From assembly GCF_030028105.1 (NCBI RefSeq), contig NC_092383.1, forward strand, positions 86,013,921-86,077,920: a stretch of 64,000 bases of DNA, in the 5' to 3' direction. Shown here piece by piece: positions 12,987 to 41,884 of the stretch. The position numbers and the translations under genes were made by a program. The DNA is from Mobula birostris (taxonomy: Eukaryota). The number at the start of each line of letters is the position of its first letter. Position 1 is the first letter of the stretch. A model generated the notes under the pieces. It saw only the letters and a program-made list of their open reading frames with translations. It was not told the DNA's origin and made no database searches.

Positions 12987-12990
12987 TGCT

Positions 12991-18787: not shown

Positions 18788-19030
18788 CTATGGAGTACCA
18801 GGAGAGAAAGCTTTCCGTCTGGGCTTTGTGGGTTGGCTTTGAAATTTGATATCTGCGTAGGTGGTGTTGTCCTCATCCATAACAGAGTGTCCTGCTCGTG
18901 ACTTCCTTTTAAATTTCATGTTTGCATACACAGTTCCATTTTCATTGTTAGCTGACTGAGCAGCTGCCTCATTGTTTTGATCATGGTGTAGATCAGCATA
19001 AACAATGTTTTCTTCCAACATGGCCGTTTC
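18788..19030 (-). CDS. Terminal cytoplasmic exon of inhibitory CD300/pIgR/MDIR-like receptor
   Basis: Acceptor ttatcatttcag|GAA (phase 0); ETAMLEENIVYADL...NGTVYANM...DNTTYADI...SPGTP*. Confidence 0.88.
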   Translation of the reverse strand, partial: ETAMLEENIVYADLHHDQNNEAAAQSANNENGTVYANMKFKRKSRAGHSVMDEDNTTYADIKFQSQPTKPRRKAFSPGTP

Positions 19031-19489
19031 CTGAAATGATAAATCAATTCCATTATCTATTGTCTGGTTGGTGAATGTGGAAGGTGAGGCACGAAAGGTT
19101 GCAGGGAGAAGGCTCCTTGCTTTCTGATCTATGGTTTTAAGTTGCCGGATTTTTAAAAAAATTATCTTATGTTTATAGCTAGAGTTCTATTCTCAACTTT
19201 AAGTGGAAACATATTCACTACTCTATAAAACAATTTGATACTCTTGCAGACATCTACCAGAACACCTTCAGTTTCCTCTCTTTAAATAAACCCTGATTCA
19301 TTCAATCAGCTTGTAGAATATAATTTTCCAGAATGTTTGACAACAGTTTATGACTCAGTGGCTGTAATCCTTAGTCCGGACCCACTACTAACTGGGCAAC
19401 AACAGCATGTTGCTTTACAACACCAACACACTAAACTGGTCGAAGGTGTTTCACAGAGTTTAGCAAGGGAAGAGGTTGAAAATGAACTT

Positions 19490-19880
19490 GAGCTAGGGCT
19501 TTTACTCTTTGGAGAGAAGGGGGATGACAGGAGACATGATAGAGGTGTACAAGATAATAAGAGGAATAGATAGAGTGGATAGCCAGCGCCCCTTCCCCAG
19601 GGCACCACTGCTCAATACAAGAGGGCATGGCTTTAAGGTAAGGGGTGGGAAGTTCAAGGGAGATATTGGAGAAGGTTTTTTACTCAGAGAGTGGTTGGTG
19701 TGTGGAATGCACTGCCTGAGTCAGTGGTGGAGGCAGATACACTAGTGAATTTTAAGAGACTACTAGACAGGTATATGGAGGAACTTAAGGTTAGGGGGTT
19801 ATATGGGAGGCAGGGTTTGAGGGTCGGCACAACATTGTGGGCTGAAGGGCCTGTAATGTGCTGTACTATTCTATGTTCTA
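19490..19880 (+). mobile_element. 5'-truncated CR1 3' end, same subfamily as 10044-14317
   Basis: GDMIEVYKIIRGIDRVDSQ..FPRAPLLNTRGHGFKVRGGKFKGD; tail tactattctatgttctatg. Confidence 0.92.
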
Positions 19881-20544
19881 TGCTCTATGTTAACTTGAGA
19901 ATTATTTGGGTAAATTACAATACTTTTAGGGTTTACAGTCTAAATGGTTTGTTGTAGCAGGTTAATTGATCACATGGGTGTAATTGAGTGGTTCGTGGGT
20001 TGGAAGGACCGGTTACTCTGCTGTATCTCTAACAAACAAAAGTTAAGAGGACAGAATTGCAGGAGTTCATGGATTTGTGGGATTTGTCCAGTATGTGGGA
20101 TTTGGGCAGCTGAAGCTACTGACATTGGTGGTGGGATTCAGAGACTGGAGGATGCACAAGAGGAACACACAGTTCTCTGAGGGTACAGCTCTTGGAGGGG
20201 AAGTGATGCCAACAAGGGAAAATGTATGGCAGAGCAGAATCCTTCAACAGTCCCCACCCTGCAGTTCCTTTGAGAAAGTGAAAAGCAACTGATGAAGTTG
20301 AGAGAACAATTGAATCCCTTTGATAACATTGACCCTAATTATTCAATTAGGACAAAGTTAAATCAATTGGGATTTTAATGAAGAAGATAATAAAAATTAA
20401 ACAAACATTCTGAAAACTGTGGAAAATATCACAAAAAATGTTGTTTATAACAGACCGAATAGACAATAGAATATTCATACTGGTGTCAGGATTGAGGGGT
20501 AGAGTGAGAAAGTTGGGTGGGTGAGGTCAGCAGAGAACAGATAT

Positions 20545-20790
20545 TTACTTATTTAGATATACCGCATGGTAACAGGCCATTCTGGCCAAACAAACCCATA
20601 CTACCCAATTAAACCCATGTGACCAAAGTAACGGACTTTGGTATGTGGGAGGAAATGGGCGCACCCAGAGGAGATCCACACAGTCATGGGGAGAACATAC
20701 AGACAGCAGCCACAGTGAATGTACGTTGCTGGCGCTGTTACAGCGTTACGCAAACCGCTATGCCAGCGTGCCATCCCCAGTTTATTCTTC
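20545..20790 (-). mobile_element. SINE (HE1-like elasmobranch SINE), degenerate
   Basis: Shares ctttgg..tgtggga..aa...gcacccag.gga.a.ccac.ca.tca.ggggaga with copies at 21.3 and 23.3 kb; (ATTT)n-like tail. Confidence 0.55.
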
Positions 20791-21228
20791 TGAATAGACT
20801 TGCCCTATTTTTCTGACTTCACATCAGAGTTTGAGACTCAGACGGATTACACAAAATGTAAGCTGGTAAATTATTAAACCCAAAGACAGATTTAGACAAT
20901 TAGACACTCGATCTCCAACAGTAGAGAAAGGACCAACCTCACTTTTCACCATTTGGTAATGATAATCAGGCCTGGAGCCACTTTGAAGAATAGTAACGCA
21001 AAATATTATGGATAGACTGAAAGAAAATCTGGATGAGCATGAGAGCAAGGGACAAATAACTGGAAGGATATGCTGATGGGATTCAGTGAGAGGGGTGTTC
21101 AGAGGTTTGTGTAAAATATTAATACTGGAATGGACTGGGAGGGGGGAATGAATGATCTGTAAACTCCTATGTAATCCAATTGTTAAACATTCTGAAACAT
21201 TCAGACACTTTATACTTCATGTCCGTAC

Positions 21229-21275
21229 CTGGGTTTCATTGTTGCCTTCTCCGTGAGATGTGTTGTGCTTCGATT
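21229..21275 (-). CDS. Short cytoplasmic exon (47 nt, phase 1->0) of the inhibitory receptor
   Basis: tgtattttccag|AA TCG AAG...ACC CAG|gtacgg; (E)SKHNTSHGEGNNETQ joins the TM exon to the terminal exon in frame. Confidence 0.75.
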
Positions 21276-21334
21276 CTGGAAAATACAACATTACTGCTAA
21301 AAATTCCATGAGGGGAGCACAGGCATGAATATGT

Positions 21335-21645
21335 ATTTACTTATTTATTGAGTGATACAACACAGAGTCGGCCCTTGCAGCCCTTTGAGCTTCGCCACCC
21401 CAGCAACCCCCGACAAACCAGATTAACCCTATCCTAATCATGCGACAATTTCCATTGACTCATTCACCTACCTGGTACGTCTTTGGACTGTGGCAGGACA
21501 CTGGAGGACCCGGAGTGTATCCATGCATCCCACAGGGAGGGCATACAGAGACTCCTTTCAGAACGGCTCTGGAATTGAACTGCAAACTCTAGAACGCCCC
21601 GAGCTGTAATAGCTTCACCTGAACCGCTAGGTTACCATGACCCCC
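21335..21645 (-). mobile_element. SINE copy
   Basis: Closely similar to 23335-23645. Confidence 0.65.
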
Positions 21646-23334
21646 ATACTGAATCACAGAACCACGGGAACCCCAGCTGCAACACAGTAATGATTCTCCA
21701 CACAGAGCAATCCTCTGCTCTGGTTACTACACAATGTTCAGAAAGGATCATAGTTTCTACAACCCCCCCACCACCTTCTCTGCTACTGAAAACTAATGTT
21801 TACCATCTTTGTACAGTGTAATGACGGTTTTGGATTTGACATTTTAATTGTTTTTCATTGTTAAAAATTCTGTCTGATCTACCAAGCATTTTCTACATTG
21901 TCTGTGTGTGCATTTAGATCAGATTTCTCCCTCACAATATGGTGGAGCAGATTATCTGACAAAATTCTCATTATCTCTCCAGGTCTCTGTGGCAGATTGT
22001 CCCTCAGACAGAAGGAACAAACTGCCCAAAATAAAAATCACCTCATTTTCCAACTGACCATAAAAAAACACTTTTCAAATTCAACACTGAGATCAACAAT
22101 TTAATCTGTTGCCTCACCCTGGGGTCATACAGAATCTGAATGTTCCATTCTCAATAAGTGGTTTTGATGACCTGAGACTATTAGTGGATGTTATGTCCCC
22201 GCCGATATGGTTTGCTATTTTATTTCTAGCCACTAGATATCACTGCTTACTTGTAAGTTTGCAGCTGTTTTTCATTCCTTACAACTGTGTTTCTAAGCAA
22301 TTGACCTTCGACATCAGGTCGGCCATTTTATAATCATTTGTATATTTTTTTCATTCAGAAACACTTTGTTACGAGTCAAATGAATTTATAATAATATTTA
22401 AATCCATCTCTTGTGAGATCATCTAGAAACACTGTCATTTTGCTCACTGAGTTCCTGGCTTACTGTAATGTGTTGCTGGACAATAGAACTGCCTTCAGAC
22501 TACAACTACACCTGGACTGGAGTTTACCTGTCTGACTAACTTAAGAAAACAGGGAAAACTCCTGAGTGAGGGCAGAACAGTGGAAGTTGAGTTGTGAACA
22601 GATTTTACTTCCCAAAGCCCGTCTCATTTTTTTATTAATAGTAGTTAACAATATAAAGAGAAATGTCAAAGGAAATCAAGAGCAGTACACTCTGTTACTG
22701 ATGAGGATAATGTCACCAATGAAGATATCAAATTTCAAAGCCCGCCCATCTTTAATTCTTCATTAATCCTATTACCACCCACCTTTTGCCTCACACATTT
22801 TCTTTTCTAGTGATTTTTTCTGTCTTGTACTCTATCAGAATCGCACTTTTTTGTGCTTGCTTCCGTGCTTCCTCTGCACCTCGAGACTTGTTATTGCTCA
22901 CATTTTCCAGTTCTGATGCAAGACCGTTGCCTTGAAGGATCAGCTGTTCCTCTCTCCACAGCTGCCATCTGACATGCTGAGCATCCAGAGCACTTTTCTG
23001 CCTGTATCTCAGGTATTGAACTTTTAGGGAATTTCTCTTTGGAAAAGAATGCATTCCTTCTGTTCAGATCTATGCAACAAACAGTGACTTGGCGATAATA
23101 CAAGGCTGAAAGTAACTGTCTGGTTTGTTGGAGAGAGAGAGAAGCCAGGAAATACGTCACGGGGAGCAGTCGAATTATTAGTTGTTATAATTTTCAGCCA
23201 ATGAGATATGAGGCTGCAGGGGCTTTATTTTCCAGTGATCAACTCAATTTCCCCATCTGAAAATAACACACAGAAGATCACTGTACTCACAGCTCTCTTT
23301 ACTGGTATACAAAGTCTATTGAAGGGACACAAGA

Positions 23335-23645
23335 TTACTCATTTATTTATTTATAGATCACAGAGTAGGCCCTTCTGGCCCTTTGAGCCATGCTGACCCA
23401 GCAACCCTGACAAACATGATTAACCTTAACCTAATCATGGGACAATTTACAATGACCAAATAACATACCTGGTACGTCTTTGGGCTGTGGGAAAAATGTA
23501 GAACACCCCGGGAAAGCCTACACACTCGATGGTGAGGACATAGAGACTCCTTACTGAATTTCACCGGAATTGAACTCCAAACTCCAAAGTACCCCGAGGA
23601 GTAATCACGTCATGCTAACCCCTACGCTACCATGGTGCCCATCTC
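23335..23645 (-). mobile_element. SINE copy
   Basis: Closely similar to 21335-21645; atttatttattt tail. Confidence 0.65.
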
Positions 23646-24179
23646 AGGATCATCTCAACAAAGCAGACCTATAAGTTAATCTACAGCAACTTTTCCAATA
23701 AGAGCAGGGAAGTTTCTCCAGTGATATGTAGTGAGTGATAGATTGGTAAAAGATACACCTGATCTTTAATTGGAGAATTGCACGTAAGTATGATTTTACA
23801 CATACATTGTCCAAATGATTACATTTAATTGGAGGTTGTACTGAGGAACAGCTTATTGAATACACTTTCAAATACTGTACAACAGCTAATTTCCCAAAAC
23901 TGAGAACAACAGGTGAGACCATCTAAATCTTTCTTCTACCCAAACTCTTGGTTCTCTGCCATTCCACAGTTGATGTGAGATTCCATCGCCTGATGTTTCA
24001 GGAATAATGGAGTCACCAGGTTACAGTGAGAGCAACACCATTCATTCATGTGTTGTAAACCAACACATCAGCACTCTAAACCTGGCTTTTTGTTCACTGC
24101 AGCCAGATCAAGTTCATTAAGATTCAGCAGCTAGCTATCATATTCATCATGAAATAATGAAAGCAAAAACAAAACCTAC

Positions 24180-24271
24180 CCTTGTTTTTTCTCTTCAGGT
24201 AGCAGAGGAGACAAATGACAAGTAGTATGAGAAGAATTCCAATGACACTGAGCACAATTATGTAAGTGTGG
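24180..24271 (-). CDS. Transmembrane exon (92 nt, phase 2->1), uncharged TM, inhibitory receptor
   Basis: cctttccttttctttaccgcag|C CAC ACT...AAC AAG G|gtaggt; HTYIIVLSVIGILLILLVICLLCYLKRKNK. Confidence 0.88.
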
Positions 24272-25022
24272 CTGCGGTAAAGAAAAGGAAAGGGTTAGTC
24301 CTTGTTCACCATTTATTCTTGGCCATTTGTAAAGTCTGACATTTACACAGCATTTTTCATGAGCTCAGGATGTCTGCAGCTCAGAAAATGAATATTAGAC
24401 ACTGTTGACTGTGGGAAATTGCAGCAGCGAATCTGCTCACAGCAAAGTCTCACAAGCAGAAATGTGACCATGACCAATGATAGTGATGTTGGTTAGAGTG
24501 TAACGATTGTCCAGGCCATTTGGGAACCCTACCATATTCCTTTACAAACATTTCATCAGAACTGTTGCACAATGGGTTTGATTGGTGTTTTCTTCTCCAA
24601 CAGACACCATTGCTGACCATGTAGCTGAACCTGTTCTTGGAATGGCCCCCATGGTTTTCTTCGTTTCGTGGCTGTCTGGACTCTTGTCTGGCTTGGATGA
24701 GTCAGGCTGAAGAGCCTGTTGTTCTAATATATAACAATGACTTTATGACTCAGAACATGAGCTTCAACTGCTATACTTAAATTATTAAATATTTAGGTTA
24801 AGAAAATTATATTTGTTTTCAGGCTTAATGCCTGTGCAATAAAATCAGGAATACTCAGTTTCCAATACATCATTTCATTGAAGTTAATCATGTCAAACAA
24901 GTGTAAATCCAGTTAAAGAGAAACAAATTTCTCTCCCACTGAATATATTTGGAAACAGTCGCAGTGAACCCTCCTGTAGAGAGAACCTTATACTTTACAT
25001 TTGAGGTGAAATAGTTTCTTAC

Positions 25023-25061
25023 CTTTGTGTACTTGTCATTGATTTTGTCACAGTATTTTCA
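25023..25061 (-). CDS. Ser/Thr-rich stalk exon (39 nt, phase 2->2)
   Basis: aatttcag|T GAA AAT...CAA AG|gtaaga; ENTVTKSMTSTQ; its AG plus the C of the TM exon gives Ser. Confidence 0.65.
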
Positions 25062-26413
25062 CTGAAATTATTTGACCCTGTTAAAAGAGTATGAAATTCA
25101 ATTTCATCTGCTTTGTACTTGCAAAACCAAAAGAGCAGAATTGTAAGACCAATAGGTACTTGAGCACGGTGGACCAAAGGTGATCTGTTATTTAATACAC
25201 TTTTAATGATTAAAGGTGAGATTTATTTGTTGCATGTATATCAGAACGTACACCACTTTTATGTTGTCCACTAATTCCCATCCTCTAACCCCAGTATGAC
25301 TTTGTGTGACAGAAACCTCAACCATTCTCAGAAGCTGTCATAAAATATTGATAACAATTTTCTATGTACGTATAGGATTTCTGTGATTCTCTTGTTGGAG
25401 GAAATCTTTCCACTCCGCCAGCGAGCACTCAGATATTTGAATAAAGCTTTTCATTTTTGAAACATTTGCTTAAACTGCACAGAGTAATAGATCTAAGTAT
25501 AAGAATGAAATGATGATCAATGTTCTCCTGTAATTGTCCCCAGTCCGGACCCTGCAGCCTGTGAAACATCCCTTTCAACATGAACTCCATCCATTCCTCA
25601 GGGAATACTTTATGCATTAAAGAGACCCCCTTCGAGCTTTTAGACCATCAAGCACAGCTTTCAAAAGAAATTTGTGAACCTATTAGATCCAAGGAAATGT
25701 GCCATGTTCAGTAAAAGCAGCAATGCTGAGTATTAGAAGTATTTTAGAAGTTAAAAGAAAACAAAGTAATTGATTAAAACACTGAAAATATAGAAAGTGA
25801 GCAAGTTTGCCAGAAACATATGTACCTATGTGAAAACTTCAATACGTATGTGAACAGAAGGTTAATTAAAACAAATATAGGATATCTAACAGACAGAAAT
25901 GGGGAAATTTATAATGGGTACAAAGAAACACAAGACCAATTCAATACATTGGTTTTGGTTTTGTCCTTCTTCACCGCATTTCCTGATACCAATGTCAGGT
26001 TAATTGATCTGTAATTTCTTCTTTTCTCTCCACCTCCTTTTAAAAATAGAGTAGTGATCTTCTCTCCAATCCATTGGAATTAAAAAGGACCAGCAATGCA
26101 TCTATATTTTCCTAATGCCAATTCCTTATGTTATCTGGGATGTAGAGTATCAGAACCTGGAGATTTATTGGTTTTCTCCCACATCAGTATTCCCAACACC
26201 TTTCCACTATTATTGGTGATTACCTGCTTTCTGCCTTTCAATAAACCCTGTGATGTCCAGTATTTCTGGGAGATAATTCTTTCCCATATTTTTTTGATCT
26301 CTCTACCTCTGAGAAAAATAACTAAATCTTTCGTGAATACAGGGTTCACCACTTTCTGAGAGAAGAAGTCTTCCCTATTCCCAGTCTTAAATGGCTCACC
26401 CTTATAGATTATT

Positions 26414-29400
26414 TTTTTCTTTTTCAATATTTGTATTGATTTCTTACATAAAAGAATACAGAGTACAGGAGGATATATATTATATCAATTGCAATATATT
26501 TAATCAGACTTATAGTCTCATTACCCCGTATTCATGTAAATTAAATTAAATTATAATATTGAAAAGTAATAATTTTATTATACAAAAAAACCTAAACACA
26601 CTACCAAGAAAAGCTGTTTGGTAAAGAAAAAAAAAAGGGAAAAAATCCTTATCATATATAAAACATATTATTAGCCAACATCTGTACATAATAACAAGTC
26701 AAAGGTTTTGAAAATAATTCAAAAAGGGTCCCCACAATGTTAGAAAGTCTTGTCTAGATTCAGAAATTGAACAACGAACCTTCTCTAAATTTAGGCATGA
26801 CATAACATCACTTAACCATTGAGCGTGAGTAGGTGGAGCAACATCCTTCCACTTAAGCAACAATACCCTCCCAGCTATAAGAGAAATAAAAGCCAAAATG
26901 TGCAAATCAGGTGTCTCCAAGATGATATATTTTCCTCCAAATAAGTCAGTCAGAAAGTTAGTAAAAATGGGACTTGAAAGAGAAAATCTCAATAAACCAA
27001 AATATTTTCTAAATTGTACCTATCAGTTAGTTTACTTAAAAATAAAGGAATTGAGGATCCAAGAAGAGAAATTATAGAAAATTTATTAACAGAGGTAGCT
27101 TCTAAAGAAACCCAAACCGAACAGTCCTCTGGGTTAACATAATATGACCAAAATGTGAGGTTCCGTATATTGACTGCCCAGTAATAAAACCTAAAATTTG
27201 GGAAAGCTAAACCTCCATTCTTTTTAGCTTTTTGAAGATGAACTTTATTTAGTTAAGAAAGTTTATTTTTCCATATATATGAAGATATGTAGAATCAAAA
27301 GAATCAAAGAAGGATTTAGGAATAAAAATGGATAAGGCCTGAAAAAGATAAAAATTTAGGCAAGATATTCATTTTAATAGAATTAGTTTGGCCAATCAAC
27401 AATAATGAAAGGGGCGACCATTTTGATAGTGCCCTTTTTATATAATTCAGTAGGGTAAAAAAATTTGCTTTAAATAAATATTTATAGTTCCTAGTAATTG
27501 TTACAGCTAAATAAGTAAATTGAATTTTTACAAATTCAAAAGGAAGATTAGTATTAATTGATACCAAATTATTCAAAGGAAAATGTTCACTTTTATGAAA
27601 GTTTAATTTATATCCTGAAAACTGACCAAAGCAGGAGAGCAAGGAAAGCACGGAAGGTACTGAAGTCTCAGCATTAGAAATATAAAGCAATAGATTGTCA
27701 GCATAAAGCAAAACTTTGTGAATAGTACCTCTCCTTAAAATACCAGTGATATGATTAGATTCTCGAAAAGCAATAGCTAAGGGTTCTAAGGCCAGATCAA
27801 AAAGCAAAGGGCTCAAAGGACAACCTTCCATGTTCCATGTTGAAGTTTAAATGTTTTGGAATTCTGAGAGTTAGTAAGAACCCGAGCAGAGGGAAATAAA
27901 TAAAGTAACTGAATCCATCGAATAAAATCGGGCCCAAAATTAAATTTTTCTGAGGTTTTAAATAAATAATTCCATTCAACCTGATCAAAAGCTTTCTCAG
28001 CATCTAAGGATATTGTACATTCTGATATCTCTTTAGAAGAAGAATAAATAACATTTAATAAACGACGAATCGACCTTCCCCGAGTGCAATGAGCATACAG
28101 CCTCGGCAATTTCCTCATAAGAAATAGGTAGATCAAACTGTTTTCGGTTATCATCAGAAAGTGTAGGGATGTTTAATTGATCTAAGAAATTATTCATTAC
28201 AGTATTATCTTTAGAAAGATCAGAACTATAAAGTTTAGAATAAAATTCTCTAAAGCTATCATTTATATCTAAATGATAAGTTGTCCTATCACCATTAGCT
28301 TTACGAATTTCTTTAATTTGCCATTTAGCTATAAATGTTTTTAATTGATTAGCCAATAATTTACCTGTTTTGCCTCCATGAATATAAAATTGACTTTTAT
28401 CTTTTAGGAGTTGAGTTTCAATTGGCTATGTTAAAAGAAGATCATATTTAGTTTAAATTTCAACACGCCTTTGATATAAAGCAGGTTCTGGAGCCAAGGC
28501 GTATTTATGATCTAATTGTTTCAACTGATTAGCTACTTCAATTCTCTCTTTATTAGCTTTTTGCTTAACATTTGCAGTACAAAAAATAATTTGTCCTCTA
28601 ATATAAACCTTAAGAGCATCCCATATAATAAGACTAGAAGTCTTTTCCCGCGTATTCTCTTCAAAAAAAGAGTAATTTGTCTCTCCAATTTTTTTTTAAA
28701 ATCCTTATCTGATAGCAAAGTTAGATTAAAATGCCAAAATCTGTTTATTTGAGGGAGACGAGGGAGATTGAAAGATAAAAACACAGGAGCATGATCTGAG
28801 ACAGCAATCTCTTTATATTCACAGCATCAAACTGATGGAATCATTTGGCAATCAATAAAAAAAAATAATCAATCCTGGAATACGTATGTTGGATATGGGA
28901 AAAAAATGAGTACTCCTTATCTATTGGATGTAAGAAATGCCAGACATCAATAATATCATATGTCATTAGAAAAGATTGAATAAACAAGGCTGATTTACTA
29001 AGTGTCGCTGGTTTGGAAGATGATCGATCTAAAACTGGGTCTAACCAGCAGTTAAAATCTCCGCTCAAGACCAGTGGGTAAAGACTTAAATCTGGCAAAG
29101 GCAAAAAAAAAACACTCAAAAAACCCTGGATCATCTATATTCGGGACATATACCTTAGCAAGTGCCATTAATTTATTATCTAATTTTCCTGATACTATAA
29201 CCAAATGCCCATTGGTACTTTATGTTGAACAAAAGAAACTGTATCTATAAAAATCAAAATCCCCTCGACTTATCCTGAAAGTAGGAATGAAATTGTTATT
29301 TTTTCCAATGACTAAAGATGCATAAGTTGTCATATTTACGAACATGAGTTTCTTGTAAAAAAATAATTGGGACCTTAAATTTTTTAATGTAGGTAAATAT

Positions 29401-30880
29401 CTCATTCCGTTTTACGGGGTAGTTTAATCCATTTACGTTAAAACTAAGTAAATTAATAGTATGATCCATTCTTAATACTACTTAAAGGAAAGGTTAGAAT
29501 AGTAACCACTGGAATGTATATTAAATCCAAACAATGAACTTTGAGATAGGGTAACCAGGCAACAAGTGTGGCTAAGTGACCAAAACAGCTTACAGAAAAG
29601 AAAACACCCCGCCTCCCACCCAAAGTCAAAAAGCCGACCAATAGACAGTCGACAGCTAAACCTAATGACATTACTTCCCAAAAGTATAGGTCCAAATAAT
29701 TTTCCAAGATTAACTGCATTCCAACCTAGACAACTCATGAGACAAAGCAACTAAACCTTATTGAAAGGAAAAACCTCAAAAATGTATAATATATAATATT
29801 AAAAAAAACTATCAAAGTTCAAAACATATTAACACTCAAGGTATTATCTCATTAAAATCTTATTTTTTAAGTAAAGCATTGAAGAGTTCAAAAAGAGAGT
29901 TAGCTGCAAAGGTATACCAAAAGTAAAAGAAGCAATTATTCATGTAGGAAGATATTAAACAGTTAGTCTCCTGATTCTAAAAAACTCTTGAGCTTCTTGT
30001 ATTGAACGGAGCCATTTCTGAGAACCATTCCTCAAAATAATTCTGAGCCGAGCAGGGTAACAGAGAGATGGCTAGAAACCTTTGTTATACAGTTCCGACA
30101 TAACCTGTTTAAACTTGAAGTGCTCATTCACCACCTCAGGTGAAAAATCCTCGACAATTCTGATCTTCTGACCGTTGTAATCAATCATACCTCTTCAATG
30201 GAATTCACGAATTAAAAGTTCTTTTGTTTGAAAATCATGAAACAGATTATCACTGGTCGGGGTCTCTCTCCCTCGACAGGTCTGGGCACGGGTGATCTAT
30301 GGGTTTGATCAATTTAAGGTGGAGATTTTAAAATTTTAGGAAATAATTTTGCCAAGAAGTTTGCAAAGAATTCCATAGGCTGATTACCTTCCATTAACTC
30401 TTCAAGACCCAGAATTCGTAGATTATTTCTTCTACTTCTGTTTTCTAAGTTGATAATCTTCTGTCTTAATTTTTCATTAGACTTTGACTGTTTTTCACAA
30501 AGCTGTTGCAGGTCTTCAATTTTCGCATCTAAAATCGTCAGAGTATCTTCATTCTTCTGTAATCGTTTATCATGTTCAATTAAGGTTTTTTGAATAGAGT
30601 CCAATTTTACATCAATTTGTTTAATTTCAGTGCTGAGGTGATGGAACTTCTGCTGGAACTCCTCTGAAAATACTTTTTTATGTTTCCGAAGTGTCTCCAT
30701 AATAGATCCCAAAGTTGCAGGAGAGTCCTCTTCTTTTTTACCTTTGGCACCCCTCATAATAAAACAATGTTATGTTTTCAAGTAAGATTTCAAAACAGCT
30801 TGGAAACAGCAAAGTAAGTAATATAGGAGCAGACACAAAAAGCTGTTACAGTACTCCATCAACAATCAGTAGGCATCTCC
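26414..30880 (-). mobile_element. L1-clade LINE, near full length (5'UTR, ORF1, internally deleted ORF2), inserted into an older CR1 fragment
   Basis: ORF1 coiled coil ...INLENRSRRNNLRILGLEE; APE (LSGDFNCWLDPVLDRSS, TYSRIDYF); RT (ISLDAEKAFDQVEW, GCPLSPLLF, LYADN); candidate TSD agattatt at 26406-26413 and 30881-30888; CR1 sequence continues on both sides. Confidence 0.9.
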
Positions 30881-32061: not shown

Positions 32062-32269
32062 CTTGGAGACTCAGTGAATGAGAATACACAGTTCTTTTTT
32101 GTGTGTGGTCATATGTTGTTTTTAGGACACAGACATTCACGATCCATGTGATTTCTGTACTTTTCATCAAGATAAATCTCCTTTAATTTTATGACTCAGC
32201 CCATTTTCTATAAAATGCAGCACAGATAATTGTTTATAAATTCAGGCAGAGCAAATATGGATAAAAGTC

Positions 32270-32705: not shown

Positions 32706-32833
32706 ATTTTGAGTGATTTTTTCTTGGAAGGACTGCCTTAACAAATGGCCAGAAATATTAGCAGCTGTGACACATTCACAGTCAGCCAGCGAAAGAAGAT
32801 CAGAGGCAGGAGACACTGTGGTGAGCGACTCAC

Positions 32834-32900
32834 ATTTGAACTGCTGCGCTGAAAGGCTTTTCATTCTCTGAAAGGTGGTGACAACATACACTCCTTGCTC
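32834..32900 (-). CDS. Linker/stalk exon (67 nt, phase 1->2)
   Basis: cttcactcag|GA GCA...CAA AT|gtgagt; (G)ARSVCCHHLSENEKPFSAAVQ. Confidence 0.6.
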
Positions 32901-32996
32901 CTGAGTGAAGTTCCAACAACACAATATCCAGCACACATCAGTCATTCAGTTGTACTCCATCAACCATTACAAAGAATCAAACCCTCCAGCACTTAC

Positions 32997-33319
32997 CTAT
33001 GCTGTTGACTTCAATCACATCTCTGCAGGTGCTGACACTGTTGGAGATGGACACACTGACCACTTCACTGGACTTTTCTCCTTTTCCATTAACATTTGAG
33101 GCTTTGCAATAATACATTATTTTATGGATTGACAATGTAGATCCAGATTATTGGTATCAGATGTATTTAAATCCACAGATGGGGTCTTTTCATCACTTGA
33201 GTACTGAATGGGAAGGGAGACATGGGCAGACCCACAGGACGCTGACACGGAGTCCCCACAACTTGAGCCGCTTTTTGGTGGTGAAAATCAAAGCAAAGGA
33301 ACAGACATAGAACAAGGTT
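32997..33319 (-). pseudogene. Disabled C2-type Ig exon (paralog of 39076-39396)
   Basis: cccgtag|AA CCT...ATA G|gtaagt; SVPLL*FSPP (TGA where the paralog has CGA), DSVSASC...SLPIQY...DTNNLDLHCQSIK, then a frameshift before MYYCKASN. Confidence 0.85.
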
Positions 33320-33779
33320 CTACGGGCAAAAATCAGCAAACTTCTAATACCAAACACACTGAAGGTTTCAGTAGTTTTGTATCTCAGCCAGAACCCACAA
33401 GTTTGGATTCTCAGCAGCGCATCTGCTCCACTGTATCTCTGCATCCTCGCATCTGACTGATCTTCCATGTCTGTCAGTATCCCTGAAAACAGCAGGATTC
33501 CTGATCAGAACAACAGTGGTGACACTGAGTGAAAATCTGGGCTTCAGTCTCTCTCAGCAGCAAGGAGACAGTCTTAAATGATACCTAATAATGTGACTTT
33601 GGAATGGCAACATTGTGTGTGTGTCCTGGAAAACTCACCATAATTTTAAAGCAGGAAATTGTCAGACGTACAAAATGAATAGTGACTTTAAGGAGAGAAT
33701 ATAATTGTGGTTTGGTTTCAGTGACCTACAGCAGCAAGGGAACCCATTAGTAATGATAGCTATATGAAGACAACAAGGA

Positions 33780-34920
33780 ATCATGTGAGATCATAGACCA
33801 TAATACCATGAAACTTAGGAGCAGAATTAGGCCATTCTGTCCATTGACTCTGCTCCACCATTCCATCATGGCTGAATTATTATCCCTCCAAATCTATTCT
33901 CCTGCCTTCTCCCTGTATCCTTTGATGTCCTCACTAATCAAGAACCTATGAAATCCCGTTTTAAATATACCCAATGAATGACAGCTGACAGCTCATTCCT
34001 CACTCTTAAATTCCTCAGATTGAAGAGGTTTCCCCTCATACTTCCCTTAAACCTTTCACCTTTTACTTTTAACCCATAACCTCTGGTTGTTGTCCCACCC
34101 AACCTCAGTGGAAAAACCCTGTTTCCATTTGCCCTTTCTATACCCCTCATAATTTTGTGCACTCTATCAAATGCCCTCTCAAACTTCTATGTTGTAAGTA
34201 ATACAGGCATAACCTAGTCACTCTTTCCTGATAGCTAAGCTCCTCTAGAACTGGCAACATACTTGTAAAGTTTGTCTGTATTACATCTCTCCTGCAGGTA
34301 GGTGACCAAAACTGCACAAAATACTTCAAGTTTGGCCTCAGCAACATGTTATACACCTTCAACATAACATCCCATCTCTCTTGTACTCAGTACATTAACT
34401 TATGAAGGTCAATGTGCCGAAAGCTTTCTTTACGACCCTATCTAACTGTTACACCACTTACAAAAATTATAGACCAGACTTCACGTTGATCTACCACACT
34501 CCTCAGTGCCCTACCATTCGCTGTGTAAGACCTACCCTGGTTGGTCCTACCAAAGTGCAAAACCTCACTCTTGTCTGTATTGACCTCCATTTGTCATTTT
34601 TCAGCCTATTTTACAATCTATTGTAGATCGCTCTGCAAGCCATGATTGGATTCCTCACTGTGGAATACACACACAATCTTGGTGTCATCTGGAAATTTGC
34701 TGATCCAGTTTACCACATTTACATCCAGATCATTGATACAGATGCAAACAACAACAGACCCAGCACCAATCCCTGCGCTAAGCATCACTGTTGCCAAGAA
34801 TATTTTAATTATGTCTGCCAGGGCCCCAGTAATTTCTGCACTTGCCTCCTGTGAGGTCCGAGATAACATGTTAGCAGGCCTTGCGGATGTATTCACACTG
34901 ATTTTCCTGAGGATATCTAA
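33780..34920 (-). mobile_element. Old CR1 3' fragments
   Basis: INDLDVNVVNWISKFPDDTKI; YNMLLRPNLKYFVQFWSP; RGYGLKVKGERFKG. Confidence 0.8.
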
Positions 34921-35174
34921 CACCTCCTCCTTTAACAGGGTGGCGTTTCTTGGAGTTCAGAAGCAGGAAAATATACTGAGCCTTACACTGGAAATCAGTA
35001 TCCCAACAGTGGATGAGACAATTATGAGTGAGGTATCCTCAGCTTTGCCCACTCGCTGCAGGGCTCTGCACTGCTGTGGAGCCTCAGGATATTCCTGCTG
35101 CCCTGACTCTTCCCAGAGAAAACCTGAATCAGACATTTCAGTGGAGACATCAAGTCAATCAATGAGAAACCTAC

Positions 35175-35495
35175 CGTCAGATACTTGGAGATGCACATCA
35201 AACGCTGGATCATTGCCAGATGTTGTAATTCCACATCTGTAATGTCCTGTATCATTAGAGACAAGATTCTCCATAGTAACAGTAAATATTCCCTGGGATG
35301 TGTTATCTCTGATTGTCATTCTTCCATACTGCTCAGTTGTCCCATTTGTATCCACTAATGATGTGCATTGGTGATCCCACATGCGGCACAAATACTTTGT
35401 GTGTGAACGGTACATTGGTGCACAGTGACAATCGATTGTGACCGCTCTTCCCACAACTCCTCTTACTTTATCTTCTGCCCATAAAGCACCTGAAA
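35175..35495 (-). CDS. Ig V-set exon V2 (CD300/pIgR-like), 321 nt, phase 1->1
   Basis: ttttccctcag|TT TCA GGT...GAC G|gtaggt; SGALWAEDKVRGVVGRAVTIDC...KYLC...C...GIFTVTMENL..NDTGHYRCG. Confidence 0.92.
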
Positions 35496-35999
35496 CTGAG
35501 GGAAAAGATCTTCAGAAAATGGACAGGTAAAATAAAATTTACAAAAGCAGATTCCAGTTTCAAGATTGTTTTATGTCATTTCCTGTACGAACGTGTAAAC
35601 TAGAATAAAATTATTGTTATGCTGGATCTAAGTGCAGCAGAAAAAACACAAAAGATAACGAATACAATTATAATAACTAAAGATGTTTTATTTACAATAA
35701 ACATTGTGTTCTAAGGAATCTGCCACAGTGTCAATTGGTGTAATTGAATTCCGCATTGACTGAGAAGACGACACCATCGTCCCTCATCACGTGCTAACAT
35801 CTCTTCACAAGTAATGATTTTTATTTGATTGGAGTCATCATTGTCACTGCCCACTAATGTCCCAGTGTGCTTCCACATTTCTGAGTCAATAGATTACTGA
35901 TCCAGTCCCATTCCAGGCAGGTGAGCATAAGATCAGTGGCGGGGTGGGGGGGGGGTGGTAACATTCTGGAGGCAATTGCGAGAGACAGGATCTACCTGA

Positions 36000-37200
36000 A
36001 TTTGCAAAGGCAAGATCTGATTTGGGATAGTCAACATGATCTTGTGCATGGGAAATCCTCTCCCAAAAATATTTGACTGAGTTTTTTTTGAAAAATGATC
36101 AAAGGAACTGATGACGACAAGACCTTAGAGTTTAGCAGTTTTGTTTAGCAAGGCTTATGATCATACCTTGCATAGCAGACTGATCTGCAATGTGAGATCA
36201 CATGGTAACCTAGCTGGATGGATATTGAATAGGCTTGGTGGAAGGAGTCAGATTGTGGTCGTAGAGTATTGGTTTTCTGACAACATCAGACTTGATCATC
36301 AGTGGTATGCCATTGGGATCGGTGATTGATTTGTTAACCACTCTTAATTGTCATCAATATTAATAATTTGCAATGAATATGGAGGTAGCATGATTAATAA
36401 GTTATGGATAACACTGCAGTGTGGTGGACAGTGGAAAGAGTTTTGTAAATTTACATAAGGATCTTGAAAATGAGCCGGTGTTCAGCCCCATTACTCAGTG
36501 CCAGCAAGCTGCCCCTACCTGAGCCTATATGGTCTGCTTGCATTTGACCCGTCTCCCTCTCCTCTCGGTACTACCATCAGGTGGAAGGTGCAGGAGCCTT
36601 GGGGCCCACACCACAGGGTTTGTAAACAGTTGTCCTGCAGCTATCAGGCTCCCGGATTGGTTTCACTTGGCTCAGCACTGAACTGACTCTGCAGCTGTGG
36701 ACTCACTTTCAGAGACTCTGCCTCTCATGTTCTATGTATTATTTGTTTACGTATTTTTATTATTTGCATGATTCATCATCTTTTGCACATTGGCTTTTTG
36801 TCAGTCTTTGTTGTGTGTGGTTTTACATGGATTATATTGTGTTACTTTGTTTTGTGGACAAAGGTGCGGTGGATAATCACTGTCTTTATCCCAGGGTGGG
36901 GGAGTCGAAAATGAGAGACCCTTGGCTTAAGGAGTGAAGGGAAATTCTTAGAGAGCCTGGAGGGGCAGTGTTTTACACAGAGCAGTGTGTGCATGGAAAA
37001 GGCTGCCAGAGGAAGTGCTAGAGATGGTTACAAATACACTATATAATACACATTTGGACAAGTCCATATGTAGGAAAGTTTTAGAAGGAAACCAGCCAAA
37101 TGCAGGGAAATGGGAGAAGCTCAGGAAGACACTGTGGTCAGCATGGACGATTTGGGGTGAAGCTGCTGTTTCCATAACCTATAACTCTCTGACTCTGCAG
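36000..37200 (+). mobile_element. Degenerate CR1 fragments interrupted by a SINE-like repeat
   Basis: FSKAYDHTLHSRL; LAGWILNRLGGRSQIVVVE; 3'UTR-like end ...ataactctctgactct. Confidence 0.6.
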
Positions 37201-39075
37201 CATCCTCCCTAAACTGGAACACACTTTTGAAAAGTTAAATTCAGAATTCTATTTCATTGCATAGATGTGACAGCTCATGGGATCACAGCTAATCAGATTG
37301 CACTTCAATTTCAAAATTCAAAGTTCAAAGTACATTTATTATCAAAGATTTGATACCATATACAACCTTGAGATTCACCTCCTTCCAGGTAACCATAAAA
37401 AAAAAGAACACCCAATATACAGAAAAAAAAGCAAATCAAAGTAAGCAAATAACATTTGGAATTGAAATTCACAAAACTGAGGCCACAGCCAAGAAGCCAG
37501 TCATCACTGTAGCCAATTCATGAGCCCGTTACTTGCCAACCACGGCCTCAGTTCAGCATAAAGACACATAAACCTTACTGTGCAGCAAGCTGAACACCAG
37601 CCCATCCCTCGCCTTGGACTGACATTCCTTTAGTGATTAAAAGGGATTTGAAGATTTATTATCCTTGTTGTAATCATGAAATGCAGCAGTCTTGTTCATA
37701 GAAGGAATGGGTTTCCTTCTCATGTCTCAAAGCGAGTGAGGTTTTTTATTCAACAACTAAAAATTCAGTCTCAGCAGTTAGTAATTCACCTGGGCTGCTC
37801 AGATATTCAAAAGCTAGAGATGACCAAAGACAATGAGACCATAAGACATAGGAGGAGAATTAGGCCATTTGGCCCATACAGTCTGCTGCACTATTCCATC
37901 AAGGCTGATTTATTACCCGACTCATTTCTATTCTCCCCGTAATCTTTGATGCCTTTCCTAAACGAGAAACTATTAAGTACGCTTTAAATATGCCCAATGT
38001 CTTGGCCTCAAAAGCCATGTATGGTATTGAATTCTATAGATTCAACACCCTCTGGCTACAGAAATTCCTCCACATCTCTGTTCTAATGTACGGAGTCTGC
38101 ACATCCTCCATGTGGACTGTATGGGGTCTCCCCAAGTGGTCCTGTCTCCTCCCACAGTCCAAAGACATACTCATTAGGAGAATTGCTCTTTGCAGATTGC
38201 CCTGTGATGAGGTTACAGTTAATTGGGTTTGTCGAGAGTTCCTTCGGTGTTGTGGCCCAAAGGGCCGGAAGTGCCTACTTTGTACTCTATCGGTAAATAA
38301 ATAAAATAAAGGGATGTCCTTGCATTCTGAGGCTGATTTTTCAGGCATGTTTTCCCCATAAGGAAACCATATTTGATCATATACCTCCAAATACCCCAAA
38401 ATCCTGTTCTTAATAATAGACTCCCACATCTTCCCAACCACTAAGGTCATGCTAACTGGTCGACAAACTCTTTTCTTTTGCCTCCCTCCTTTCTTAAGCA
38501 GTGGGGTGATACTTCCAATTTTCCAATCCTTTGAACAGTCCAGTCTAGTTATTCTTGAAAGGTCACCACTAATGCTTCCACGATTTCTTTATACAACTCT
38601 TTTAGAAATTTGGGGTGTAGTCCATCTGGTCCAAATGACTCATCAGATCCCTCAGCTTCCCAAGCAATTTCTGTTTAGTAATAACAATGACATTCATCCC
38701 TGCCCTCGACATTGCCAAATTTCTGTCTTTCCCACTAATAATTGCAACATTATAAGTCCTTCCTTTTGCTTTTATGAGAATCAGAAGTCGATATCTAGTC
38801 TAGACTTTTCAAAGTAAAGCCAGAAGTATTAATGGAATATTCTCAATTTGTCCAGATGTGCAAGTCCAACTATGTTTGAGATGCTCCATATCTTCCAGGA
38901 GCAAGTGACAGACTTAACTGTTCACTGCACTTTAGTTCTACCCCATGGATGCTGCAATGTGCAGCTTCTACAAATGCAAAGAAATTCCTTACCCTAACGA
39001 GAATTGTAAGAGCAGCAGTAACAGAGGAACAAAAAGAAATATTTAAATGTATCCTCCCTTAAAATTAGAACTTAC

Positions 39076-39396
39076 TGGTGCCATTGATTTCTGTCACGTA
39101 ACTGCAGATCTCTCCGTTGTTGAAGACTGTCGCATTAACCATTGCACTGGATCTTGCTCCAAGCCAATTCGAGGCACTGCAGTAATATTGCTGGTGTGTG
39201 TGTTTGAAGGATTGACAATGTAGAGTCAGTTCATTGGTATCTGAGATCGTCAGATACCCAGATGAGGTTTGTTCATACCATCTGTAATGAATGGGAAGGG
39301 ATCCCTGGAAGGACTCACAGGAAAGTGACACAGAGCCCCCGAGACGTGAGATATTTGCTGGTGACAGATATCGAAGCACAGGAACAGACACGAGTT
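39076..39396 (-). CDS. Ig C2/I-type exon (FCRL-like), 321 nt, phase 1->1, intact
   Basis: tttcccacag|AA CTC...ACC A|gtaagt; VSVPVL...GGSVSLSCES.QGSLPIHYRWY...QYYCSASNWLG..SS. Confidence 0.9.
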
Positions 39397-39454
39397 CTGT
39401 GGGAAACAATTAAACATTCAGACATTGAATGAACATCAGAAAATCAGACACTCT

Positions 39455-39995
39455 TCTGCCACTTTATTAGGTACAAATATTAACCTGATCATTAATGCAA
39501 ATATCTAATTAGTCAATCAGACCATCAGCAACTCAGCCCATCAAAGTATGCAGAAATATTCAAGAGTTTCAGTCAATGTTCAGGCCAAACATCAGAATGC
39601 AGAAGTAATATGATCTAAGTGCCTTTGACCATGAAATTATTGTTGGTGCCAGACAGGGTCATAAGTATGTGAGGAACTACTAACCTCCTGGGATTTTCAC
39701 ACACAACTGTCTCTAGAGTTTACTGAGAATGGTACGAACAACATGAAAAACATCCAGGAAGCAGCAGTTCTGTGAACAAAGTGCCTTGTTAATGAGAGAG
39801 ATCAGAGGAGAATGGCCAGGCAGGTTCATGCTGACAGAAAGGTGACAGGAATTCAAATAACCGTGGGTTATGACAGCGGTGTGCTAAAGAGCATCTGAAG
39901 GTACAACACGTCAAAGCTCGAAGTGGATGAGCCACAGAAGCAAGAGACCATGAACATACACTCAGTGGCCACTCTGTTATGTACAAGAGGTTTAA
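39455..39995 (+). mobile_element. Tc1/mariner deletion derivative retaining the N-terminal HTH region
   Basis: gccactttattaggtac ends; degenerate DLSAFDHEIIVGAR...LLGFSHTTVSRV; paralogs at 17.1, 55.55 and 59.7 kb. Confidence 0.7.
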
Positions 39996-40200
39996 AGGCA
40001 GCAACTTGTGAGATATCTGTCGCAAGTTTGGTGGCTTTCAGGAGAGAATGAAATTTTGACTGGGTTCAGTGACCTGCCGTATAGAGGGAAACATTTGGCA
40101 TTATATTAATGCAGAGATAGTGAGGGGTGGACAGGGTCTGGATAAAGATCATGAGACATTTATTTTATGAAAGGCACAAATCAATCAATGAGAAACCTAC

Positions 40201-40521
40201 CATCATTTACTTTTAGTTCTAAATTAAATCTTGAATCGACACCTGTTGTTTCAATTCCACAGCTGTACCATCCTGAATCTCCAGAGTGAAGATCTTCCAT
40301 AGTAACAGTAAATATTCTCTGTTCCGGGTTATCTGTGATTGACACTCGTCCACTCCGTCTGTGCTGCCCATTTGTTTCCACTAAAACTGAACAATGGAGA
40401 GTCCATCCATGGCACCAATACTTTGTGTGTGAGCGGTACTTTTCTTCATAGAGACAATCGATTGTGATCGCTCTTCCCACAACTCCTCTTACATGTTTCT
40501 CTGCCCACAATGCACCTGAAA
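40201..40521 (-). CDS. Ig V-set exon V1 (CD300/pIgR-like), 321 nt, phase 1->1
   Basis: ctccctcag|TT TCA GGT...GAT G|gtaggt; AITIDC...TKYWCHGWTLHC...RIFTVTMEDL.SGDSGWYSCG, with the extra C-C' cysteine pair typical of CD300/pIgR/TREM domains. Confidence 0.93.
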
Positions 40522-40887
40522 CTGAGGGAGGCATTTTCAGATTTGAGGGAAAAGAACAACTTAATGCAACAATTATTTTTGAACATGACGGTAAAAACAG
40601 GTGCTGGTCACGTACAGCATGTGGTCCATGACACCACAGCCAATGATTTTGGTCTGAGGTGCAGTCAGTGCTGTTACTGTGTCAGCTGTGTCAGTGCTCT
40701 CTCCCCTGTGTCAGTACATTGTGGGTTCACTTCCCACTCCAGAGTCCTGAGCAGAAACCCAGGGCTGATCTTCCAGTGCAGTACTGAGGGAGAGCAGTAG
40801 TGTTGAACTTTCAATTACACAGATTATGTCGGCCTTTGAAATGTCCACAGAGGTCCCAGCTGTTTCATCTAACATGCTCCCAATTTT

Positions 40888-40906
40888 GTGTGTGTGTGTG
40901 TGTGTG
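40888..40906. repeat. (TG)n microsatellite
   Basis: Read directly from the sequence. Confidence 0.95.
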
Positions 40907-41844
40907 TATGTCTGTGTGTTCAGACAAGTTTATAAACTGCAGAAAGGGACCCCTCATGATGTCTGAAACTGTGCCCTCTGGATCTGAAGCAAATTGTAAA
41001 TATTGTACCTATCAAGTAGTTCTATGTGTAGTTAGAAAATGGTGCAACAGTGGTCATTAGTACTTTAGTGTTTAGAAATCCAGGTGTGATTTCAATAACT
41101 GTTGGGATACTTTGCGTGCTAAAATCCAATTTATTATTTCTGGAATTTAAAAAACAAGTATCAATAATAATAATGATGAACTGCCAGAGTGTCAAAATCC
41201 CATCTGGATTGTAAAGGCTTTTAGGGAGAGAAATCTCTCATCCCTACCACCCTGGTTTACCTTAGACTCCAGATCTGATAACATCCTCTGCCAGCTGCAC
41301 CACTGAAGTCGCCCAGGAAGAATTCTGATTTCAGGACAATAATGTCGATTGTCATAGTGATCCCTGCAGAGTGAGATCAGATTCCAGTAACGGTAGACCT
41401 GAAGTCCTCGCTTAACAGGTTCCAGGAGATTTCTCCAGCTGGATATATTCTCCCCGCATCTGGCTCTACGCTATTCCTCTTTTCTCCTTATCTGCTTCCA
41501 CCTCTCCCCCACCTCCAAACTCTATCCCTTTTCCACCCCATTCCAATTGCCTGTACTGCTTCACTATTCCTCAGCACCGACCCAGTTTCACGCCTCCCCC
41601 TTTCCTATTTACACCCTCTCCCTCACCAGTCACATGTGATGCAGGGTCTCGACCCAAACCATTGATATTTCCCCTCCCTCTGACAGATGCTGCTGGACAC
41701 ATTGAGTTTCTCGAGGCGTGTACTCTGAACTCCAGTTTCCGACATCTTTAGTGTCTACAGGTGTTCAAGCATTGTTGCGGAAACGTTGTATGACCCCCAA
41801 TCCAACACTGATTATGCTGTTGTCCAGTGCTGTCTGTAACTCAC

Positions 41845-41884
41845 CAGGTAGGAAACCAATCAGAAGAATCAATGTCCACATCAT
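41845..41884 (-). CDS. Leader (signal peptide) exon of the inhibitory receptor
   Basis: ATG ATG TGG ACA TTG...CCT G|gtgagt; MMWTLILLIGFLP, then G|TT = V-SGALWA with the V exon. Confidence 0.85.

Follow-up and report, generated by a model that had tools for sequence, protein, structure and literature searches.

The MDIRs (modular domain immune-type receptors) were reportedly described in the clearnose skate by Cannon et al. in 2006 (Immunogenetics 58:362, as cited in PMC3031540). These receptors join pIgR/CD300-type V domains and FCRL-type C2 domains in one chain, which bears on the origin of both families; this bearing could already be read from current annotations and, reportedly, from the 2006 work, and the manta ray gene analysed here matters little when taken alone. 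The skate MDIR2, MDIR3 and MDIR5 (Rostroraja/Raja eglanteria) and the receptor of the manta ray (Mobula birostris) share the same two kinds of domain in the same alternating order, and the tails of MDIR2 and MDIR3 carry tyrosine motifs, as does that of the manta receptor. They differ in the number of domains: two, four or five Ig domains are detected in the skate MDIRs, whereas the manta receptor has three (V-C2-V) and its fourth-domain exon is dead.

Other receptor families share parts of this build. The V domains of CD300 and pIgR have an extra C-C' disulphide pair, as do both V domains of the manta receptor (V1 and V2). Despite this pair, the manta receptor is not a CD300 receptor: CD300 (CMRF35-like) proteins have a single V-type domain with the extra disulphide and no intercalated C2, whereas the manta ectodomain has a C2 among its three domains. 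CD300A and CD300F signal through ITIMs. The pIgR, which binds polymeric Ig, is a tandem array of V-type domains only, with no intercalated C2, and has a transcytosis tail with no ITIM; the manta receptor, with a C2 between its V domains and ITIM-type motifs in its tail, falls outside pIgR. A related C2 domain and ITIM-type tail signalling are features of FCRL and CD22-type receptors; such a C2 and ITIM-type tail motifs are seen in the manta receptor. However, FCRL ectodomains are built of C2/I-type FCRL domains only and lack pIgR/CD300-like V domains, whereas one of the three manta domains is FCRL-like and the other two are V-set, which sets the manta receptor apart from FCRL as well. In a 2014 survey, no pIgR or FcRL homologues were reported in cartilaginous fish (PMC4016189).

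Exon structure and domain types

The gene lies on the minus strand of the window (the whole stretch of DNA that was analysed, 64 kb in length), with its ATG at 41884 and its stop codon ending at 18788. The features are as follows:

41845..41884, minus strand: exon 1, start codon and signal peptide (MMWTLILLIGFLP), 40 nt, with the phase-1 donor GTGAGT; matches the N-terminus of the RefSeq model P0005 exactly
40201..40521, minus strand: exon 2, V1, a V-set domain of pIgR/CD300 type with the extra cysteine pair C50/C57, 321 nt, phase 1-1
39076..39396, minus strand: exon 3, C2, an Ig domain of FCRL type with four cysteines (147, 181, 193, 218), 321 nt, phase 1-1
35175..35495, minus strand: exon 4, V2, the second V domain of pIgR/CD300 type, with the extra cysteine pair C264/C271, 321 nt, phase 1-1
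32997..33319, minus strand: pseudo-exon psiC2, relic of a membrane-proximal C2 domain in intron 4, 323 nt
27316..30757, minus strand: LINE remnant (ORF1-like coiled coil and reverse transcriptase; Pfam RVT_1, 3e-8 and 3e-7) in the 10-kb intron between V2 and stalk
25023..25077, minus strand: exon 5, stalk (GSNNFSENTVTKSMTSTQ), 55 nt, phase 1 to phase 2; aligns with the stalks of P0183, P0185 and P0186
22660..22748, plus strand: degenerate, inverted partial copy of the tail exon in intron 6, outside the transcript (blastn, 82% over 89 nt)
24180..24271, minus strand: exon 6, transmembrane (TM) helix without a charged residue (hydropathy scan), followed by the stop-transfer sequence KRKNK, 92 nt; 86% identical to the TM of P0012
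21229..21275, minus strand: exon 7, first cytoplasmic exon (ESKHNTSHGEGNNETQ), 47 nt
18788..19030, minus strand: exon 8, cytoplasmic tail with the ITIM IVYADL (Y410), YANM (Y434), the ITSM-like TTYADI (Y457) and the stop codon

All exons are bordered by AG and GT, and when the dead exon is skipped the phases are compatible at all junctions, so that the eight predicted coding exons give an open coding sequence of 1440 nt and a predicted spliced product of 479 aa. A preliminary description of this DNA had given both ends of the gene exactly and had proposed the same GT-AG, phase-compatible assembly around a disabled exon; these points are confirmed, as are the CD300/pIgR-type extra cysteine pair of the V domains, the FCRL-like character of the C2 and the uncharged TM, which is evident from the hydropathy scan and the sequence. 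Its count of 11 exons was too high: leader, V1, C2, V2, disabled C2, TM and two cytoplasmic exons are all found, but the three stalk exons are not, and one exon of 55 nt suffices in their place, which leaves eight coding exons and one pseudo-exon. This stalk exon (25077-25023) is entered in phase 1, left in phase 2 and joined in frame to the TM exon. When the stalk of a homologue with four domains served as tblastn query, this exon was the only match. The same search revealed no relic of the 8-aa mini-exon of the four-domain relatives, and when the interval from the dead exon to the TM exon was scanned ab initio for further small exons of compatible phase, only weak, unrelated candidates emerged. 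It should be noted that in the inverted copy of the tail exon the tyrosine of the last motif is replaced by asparagine.

V1 is recognized as a Pfam V-set domain (8e-12), with pIgR (3e-47) and CD300 (1e-18) as its best PDB matches. The C2 domain matches Pfam Ig_3 (2e-7), and its best PDB match is FCRL5 (7e-36, over six repeats), followed by titin and by CD22 d6-d7 (4e-5). V1 and V2 are 62% identical; V2 has an odd extra, unpaired cysteine, with CHC in place of the CHY of its relatives. The AlphaFold model of the ectodomain has a pLDDT of 87.6, and a structural search with the whole ectodomain ranks pIgR first, where the ranking alone is usable because the TM-scores are low owing to differing inter-domain angles. 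The tail has a weak Pfam similarity to the SHP2-interacting adaptor SIT (E 0.13); its motifs predict an ITIM-bearing receptor of the inhibitory class.

Membership in the MDIR family and origin of the layout

The manta product is similar to the named skate MDIRs (names taken from UniRef) along its full length, with identities of 62.7% to MDIR5 (P0202) over 332 aa (residues 2-333, E 3e-146), 61% to MDIR3 (P0176) over 322 aa of the ectodomain plus 46% over the tail, and 62% to MDIR2 (P0232) over 229 aa. Scanned with the same two profiles, the skate proteins have the layouts V-C2-V-C2 (MDIR5), V-V-C2-V-C2 (MDIR3) and V-C2 (MDIR2). The manta ectodomain is likewise a mixture of CD300/pIgR-like and FcR-homologue-like domains, and its domains fall inside MDIR domain clades. 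The division into inhibitory and activating forms within a multigene cluster is also found here: the manta protein has an ITIM, two more Yxx-hydrophobic motifs and an uncharged TM, and the TM of a neighbouring gene has an arginine.

In the domain phylogeny, V2 belongs to a batoid second-position V clade together with MDIR3 d4 and MDIR5 d3, and V1 and C2 are placed among batoid first-position domains. Dozens of proteins annotated in rays, skates, sawfish, sharks and a chimaera have the alternating V/C2 layout. According to these trees, the split between V1 and V2 is older than the batoid radiation, and duplication of a V-C2 unit underlies the layout but did not happen at the manta locus, because the second-V clade includes skate MDIR3 and MDIR5 and because psiC2 is nearer to the C2 domains of other rays than to the first C2 of its own gene.

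The manta gene is thus an ordinary member of the known MDIR family and not an undescribed subtype. The preliminary description had suggested such a subtype, which is contradicted by the same build in MDIR5 and MDIR3 and by the form V-C2-V-TM-tail in three other ray species. Its idea of a tandem V-C2 duplication survives as the origin of the layout, though not at this locus, where the position-specific batoid clades speak against it. It was right that skate MDIRs mix such domain types and that automated annotation would name the gene only as pIgR-like, and two of the checks that it had proposed, domain phylogeny and structure prediction, gave the placements and the model reported above.

Orthologues, the decayed C2 exon and the RefSeq model

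The 479-aa product is colinear over residues 1-479 with P0183 of Mobula hypostoma (87.9% identity), and it is also colinear with P0185 of Hypanus sabinus (81%) and P0186 of Hemitrygon akajei (80%). All three are annotated as pIgR-like, and like the manta product they have 478-479 aa, the order V-C2-V-stalk-TM-tail and the same tail motifs; by sequence, they are the orthologue and near-orthologues of the manta receptor. The gene spans 23,052 bp in M. hypostoma versus 23,097 bp in the manta, and in a tree of the stalk-to-tail parts the proteins of these two species are sisters at 100/99. Between them, the cytoplasmic tail is 96% identical and V1, the fastest-changing part of the manta receptor, only 80%, a pattern indicative of a receptor under selection.

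The pseudo-exon psiC2 contains a stop codon (TGA at 33290-33288), a serine at the position of the canonical tryptophan, a deletion with a frameshift and TAA at 33119-33117, and an insertion of 2 aa. Its flanks look normal (pyrimidine tract and AG on one side, GTAAGT on the other), and its inclusion would place a stop ten codons into the exon. It is 72-78% identical to the membrane-proximal C2 domains of other rays but only 47% to the first C2 of its own gene. In the domain phylogeny psiC2 sits at 100/100 inside the clade of myliobatiform MDIR membrane-proximal C2 domains, where its end branch is 0.28, compared to a median of 0.11. A search of sequencing runs with the dead exon alone gave only an uninformative word share of 0.06. 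These comparisons indicate that the three-domain form is derived from a V-C2-V-C2 ancestor through the death of the membrane-proximal C2 exon, and the gene is a concrete case of a change in domain number within the family, in which one symmetric 321-nt exon dies. At the manta locus, the dead exon is presumably skipped, as suggested by the annotated proteins of the orthologues. We give little credence to the reading that psiC2 is an old relic common to mantas and stingrays and that its role as a "poison exon" has preserved its splice sites; if this were true, inclusion would bring a stop into the message and yield less inhibitory receptor, and skipping would yield the receptor.

The only RefSeq model of the manta locus is P0005, "polymeric immunoglobulin receptor-like", of 536 aa and without a TM; there is no 479-aa model. 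P0005 is a chimera in which the first four exons are fused to a cryptic piece of psiC2 and to LINE ORFs, and it is wrong at the 3' end: its residues 370-536 correspond to 30742-30389 and 28182-28036, where pieces of the LINE remnant are used as exons. P0005 thus lacks the V-C2-V-TM-tail form that P0183, P0185 and P0186 hold. The LINE origin of its last two "exons" suggests an artefact of the gene predictor rather than a real mRNA. With this correction, one properly delimited inhibitory member of 479 aa is added to the manta MDIR cluster, and the faulty P0005 is flagged.

Alternative readings and a candidate signalling route

The locus is very likely a real, single gene for one modular inhibitory V-C2-V receptor of the MDIR family. 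Under a different reading, the manta copy is dying or dead: the decayed C2 exon would be included, the premature stop would lead to degradation of the mRNA or at most to a secreted V-C2-V fragment, and the downstream exons would be intact through slow elasmobranch decay or recent death. The normal-looking splice flanks of psiC2, the LINE in the intron that holds it, the odd cysteine of V2 and the RefSeq model, which uses part of psiC2 and never gets to the TM exon, are all compatible with such a decay. However, the last two "exons" of that model are LINE ORF pieces, the eight other exons are all open with canonical sites, and the exon-skipped protein of 478-479 aa is annotated in three other species; moreover, the stronger conservation of the tail compared to V1 argues for continued signalling constraint. 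We therefore consider a dying gene unlikely, while granting it some weight.

A different objection concerns the unity of the gene, as V1-C2 and V2 could belong to two separate neighbouring genes, with the single-gene model an artefact. The intron between C2 and V2 is 3.6 kb long and repeat-rich, and a second leader-like exon is present in the window; but the latter is located upstream of the gene, and no leader-like, TM or tail exon was found between 39076 and 35495. Within 35100-40600, contigs join 40201 to 39396 (V1-C2) and the end of the C2 exon straight to 35495 (C2-V2), exactly at the predicted sites; it should be noted that these contigs come from probable RNA runs, are mostly 90-95% like the window and may derive from paralogues or a sister species. 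Since V-C2-V also occurs in one protein in every close relative, two separate genes are hardly credible. It is only slightly less improbable that a V-C2 unit was recently duplicated in tandem at this site and so gave rise to a new subtype of receptor, distinct from all described families. The 62% identity of V1 and V2, the identity of about 50% between C2 and psiC2 and the uninformative annotation label could be taken in favour of this reading, but the alternating build is shared by skate MDIR5 and MDIR3 at 61-63% identity, the V and C2 domains form clades by position that run across skates, sawfish and rays, and the layout is annotated from chimaera to manta. On the skate MDIR identity and the position-specific domain clades, we rejected this reading.

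If the single-gene reading is correct, the gene is presumably expressed, and psiC2 would have to be skipped for the receptor to be made. The product would be a type I membrane protein of 479 aa with a signal peptide, V1, C2, V2, a short glycosylated stalk, an uncharged TM and the tail. The membrane-distal V1 may bind a putative ligand, after which Src-family kinases might phosphorylate the tail tyrosines and the phosphorylated tail could recruit phosphatases of the SHP-1/SHP-2 type, as its motifs would predict. The recruited phosphatases would then damp signals from ITAM-coupled partners, for example the activating MDIR with its arginine-bearing TM exon 21 kb upstream.

The manta gene is part of a large gene cluster in which activating and inhibitory members are paired. 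The TM and tail exons of the activating neighbour, at 63101-62762, match P0153 at 94-97%, and the arginine is in its TM exon (63101-63006). The second leader-like exon, upstream of the inhibitory gene, is at 55054.

Gene structure and the public model

The window sequence contains no N, and all features of the gene lie on the minus strand. Stop-to-stop open reading frames and tblastn within the window revealed two V-type exons, 62% identical to one another, one C2-type exon and a broken second C2-type copy that is ~50% identical to the first.

Coding exons of the receptor gene (junctions read and assembled)
41884-41845, minus strand: leader exon, 40 nt
40521-40201, minus strand: V1 exon, 321 nt
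39396-39076, minus strand: C2 exon, 321 nt
35495-35175, minus strand: V2 exon, 321 nt
25077-25023, minus strand: stalk exon, 55 nt
24271-24180, minus strand: transmembrane (TM) exon, 92 nt
21275-21229, minus strand: cytoplasmic exon 1, 47 nt
19030-18788, minus strand: cytoplasmic exon 2 with stop codon, 243 nt

AG/GT flanks were found at all eight coding exons, the phases are compatible, and the coding sequence of 1440 nt specifies 479 aa. The TM helix is without charged residues, and the tail contains the motifs IVYADL, YANM and TTYADI. The gene is sound, and its parts had been read correctly in the preliminary description, the end coordinates of which fall precisely on the start codon ATG and on the final base of the stop. 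Three stalk exons had been proposed, and support was found for one only: the 55-nt exon starts in phase 1 and ends in phase 2, continues in frame into the TM exon, is the only stretch resembling a homologue's stalk and, when included, makes product residues 1-479 colinear with three proteins in the annotation that are 478-479 aa long. Four-domain relatives differ in having an extra 8-aa mini-exon, which is absent from the three-domain proteins.

The RefSeq model of this locus (P0005, 536 aa) extends into two further elements:

33319-32997, minus strand: dead C2 exon, 323 nt, with normal-looking splice flanks
27316-30757, minus strand (the gene's orientation): LINE remnant with an ORF1-like coiled coil, an endonuclease-like ORF and a reverse transcriptase (Pfam RVT_1)

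P0005 matches the window without a difference through exons 1-4. Past exon 4 it uses a cryptic acceptor within the dead exon (about 33101-32997), and its remainder consists of two pieces mapping to 30742-30389 and 28182-28036, both of which fall in the LINE, whose reverse transcriptase passes RVT_1. P0005 lacks a TM segment, and we read it as a chimeric mis-prediction, i.e., the public model is faulty. Its NCBI name, "polymeric immunoglobulin receptor-like [Mobula birostris]", bears out the expectation that automated annotation would label the gene merely as pIgR-like.

Family membership, domain types and age of the V-C2 duplication

Exhaustive searching with V1 as query returned 148 proteins below 1e-30, and the top proteins, mapped with V, C2 and tail profiles, are alternating V-C2 arrays of 2-11 domains. 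With the stingray homologue P0012 (79% identical) as query, we found three clearnose skate proteins carrying the UniRef names modular domain immune-type receptor (MDIR) 3, 5 and 2; according to the profiles of this analysis, their layouts are V-V-C2-V-C2 plus tail motifs, V-C2-V-C2, and V-C2 plus tail motifs, respectively. The 479-aa product is 62.7% identical to MDIR5 (residues 2-333, E 3e-146), and its identity to MDIR3 is 61% in the ectodomain and 46% in the tail. According to PMC3031540, the MDIR family was the subject of a 2006 paper. Annotated proteins with this alternation of V and C2 come from Mobula, Hypanus, Hemitrygon, Pristis, Leucoraja, Amblyraja and Rhinoraja, and from several sharks and Callorhinchus as well; therefore, the proposed undescribed receptor subtype does not hold, given this wide occurrence across cartilaginous fish and in skate MDIR3 and MDIR5. 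The novelty claimed for the gene was overstated; it encodes an ordinary inhibitory MDIR and has a single dead exon.

The domain types that had been recognized were confirmed. Both V exons pass Pfam V-set and the C2 exon passes Ig_3. The extra cysteine pair of the CD300/pIgR kind is present in V1 and V2, and the solved structures nearest to V1 are pIgR (3e-47, several domains summed) and CD300 (1e-18). The C2 domain is FCRL-like, its best match being FCRL5 (7e-36, six repeats summed), followed by titin (8e-10) and CD22 d6-d7 (4e-5). The structure prediction proposed earlier was run as an AlphaFold model of the ectodomain (63 relatives as input, mean pLDDT 87.6), and pIgR ectodomains were the top structural matches. 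It should be noted that V2 reads CHC in the region 35427-35425, versus CHY in five of five aligned relatives; the additional Cys adjoins the B-strand Cys and is presumably without a partner.

Domain phylogenies were used to date the suggested tandem V-C2 duplication. In the V tree, second-position V domains of batoids form a clade, among whose members are skate MDIR3 d4 and MDIR5 d3, sawfish and ray domains and a Leucoraja protein, and in the C2 tree two C2 kinds separate across rays and skates. Such position-specific groups imply that the duplication is old and family-wide, not local; the duplication itself stands, whereas an event at the studied locus does not. In sharks and the chimaera, the domains within one protein are mutual sisters, a pattern that points to possible homogenisation or separate duplications.

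The dead C2 exon and the three-domain orthologues

The second C2 exon had been described as disabled, and the lesions are read directly: TGA at 33290-33288 stands at a position that is Gln in relatives; the canonical Trp is replaced by Ser; a few codons are deleted, with a frameshift and TAA at 33119-33117; and two residues are inserted. Entered in the C2-domain tree with X at the breaks, it is nested in the clade that myliobatiform receptors form with their membrane-proximal C2 domains (support 100/100); it is 72-78% identical to these domains, versus 47% to the first C2 of its own gene. Its end branch is 0.28, compared to a median of 0.11.

Three ray proteins have the same V-C2-V-stalk-TM-tail order: P0183 (M. 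hypostoma, 87.9% identical), P0185 (Hypanus sabinus, 81%) and P0186 (Hemitrygon akajei, 80%). Their V2 domains group with that of the product (support 89/84), the two Mobula proteins pair as sisters in their stalk-to-tail parts (100/99), and the gene spans 23,052 bp in M. hypostoma versus 23,097 bp in M. birostris. The Mobula proteins share 96% identity in the tail, against only 80% in V1; V1 and C2 are nearer to the manta paralogues P0162 and P0172 (88-92%), the latter with an activating-type TM. This likeness fits a possible exchange between paired receptors.

Transcripts and surroundings

No run recorded as RNA was found to contain the stretch. Four small runs from a single study, presumed to be RNA, were mapped to 35100-40600. 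Depth was essentially nil over the unique intron 35652-36571, while exons and repeats were covered. Contigs connect 40201 to 39396, i.e., V1 donor to C2 acceptor, and 39078/9 to 35495 with 2-3 letters between, which in minus-strand reading joins the C2 donor 39076 (one mismatch) to the V2 acceptor. For most contigs, identity to the window is only 90-95%, and one joint is clearly derived from a paralogue; thus, they show the family splicing pattern in a manta-like animal, not expression of the studied locus. In the same runs, contig depth reached thousands at 37308-38227 and 39700-39883, which marks both as highly repeated or transcribed elements within introns 2 and 3. Paralogous contigs pass from the 39.8-kb element directly into a V exon, so that the element was duplicated together with that segment of the gene.

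Related features around and within the gene
63101-63006, minus strand: TM exon with Arg (SFMIWQVGRWLLFALL...), 97% to the end of P0153
62812-62762, minus strand: short tail exon, 94% to the end of P0153
55054-55018, minus strand: orphan leader-like exon (MWSSILLITFLP), intact, with a phase-1 GTGAGT donor
22660-22748, plus strand: inverted, degenerate partial copy of the tail exon, 82% over 89 nt

P0153 is a manta protein of 820 aa with seven domains (V-C2-V-C2-V-C2-V). The match of 63101-62762 to its C-terminus places the end of an activating relative ~21 kb upstream; an activating MDIR gene has its 3' end at 62762-63101 and its Ig exons beyond the window end. The orphan leader and its flanks (about 200 nt) are 78% like the leader region of the studied gene, and the interval down to 41884 contains no V or C2 exon; this leader either is what remains of a lost gene or represents an alternative first exon. 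In Hemitrygon, P0195 and P0211 begin with this type of leader, and P0195 overlaps the P0186 locus. The inverted tail-exon copy, in which Asn replaces the last-motif Tyr, is located in the intron between the TM and first cytoplasmic exons. GC skew (2-kb bins) is strongly negative, -0.34 to -0.38, at 10001-14000 and 48001-50000; these stretches are probably low-complexity or satellite-like.
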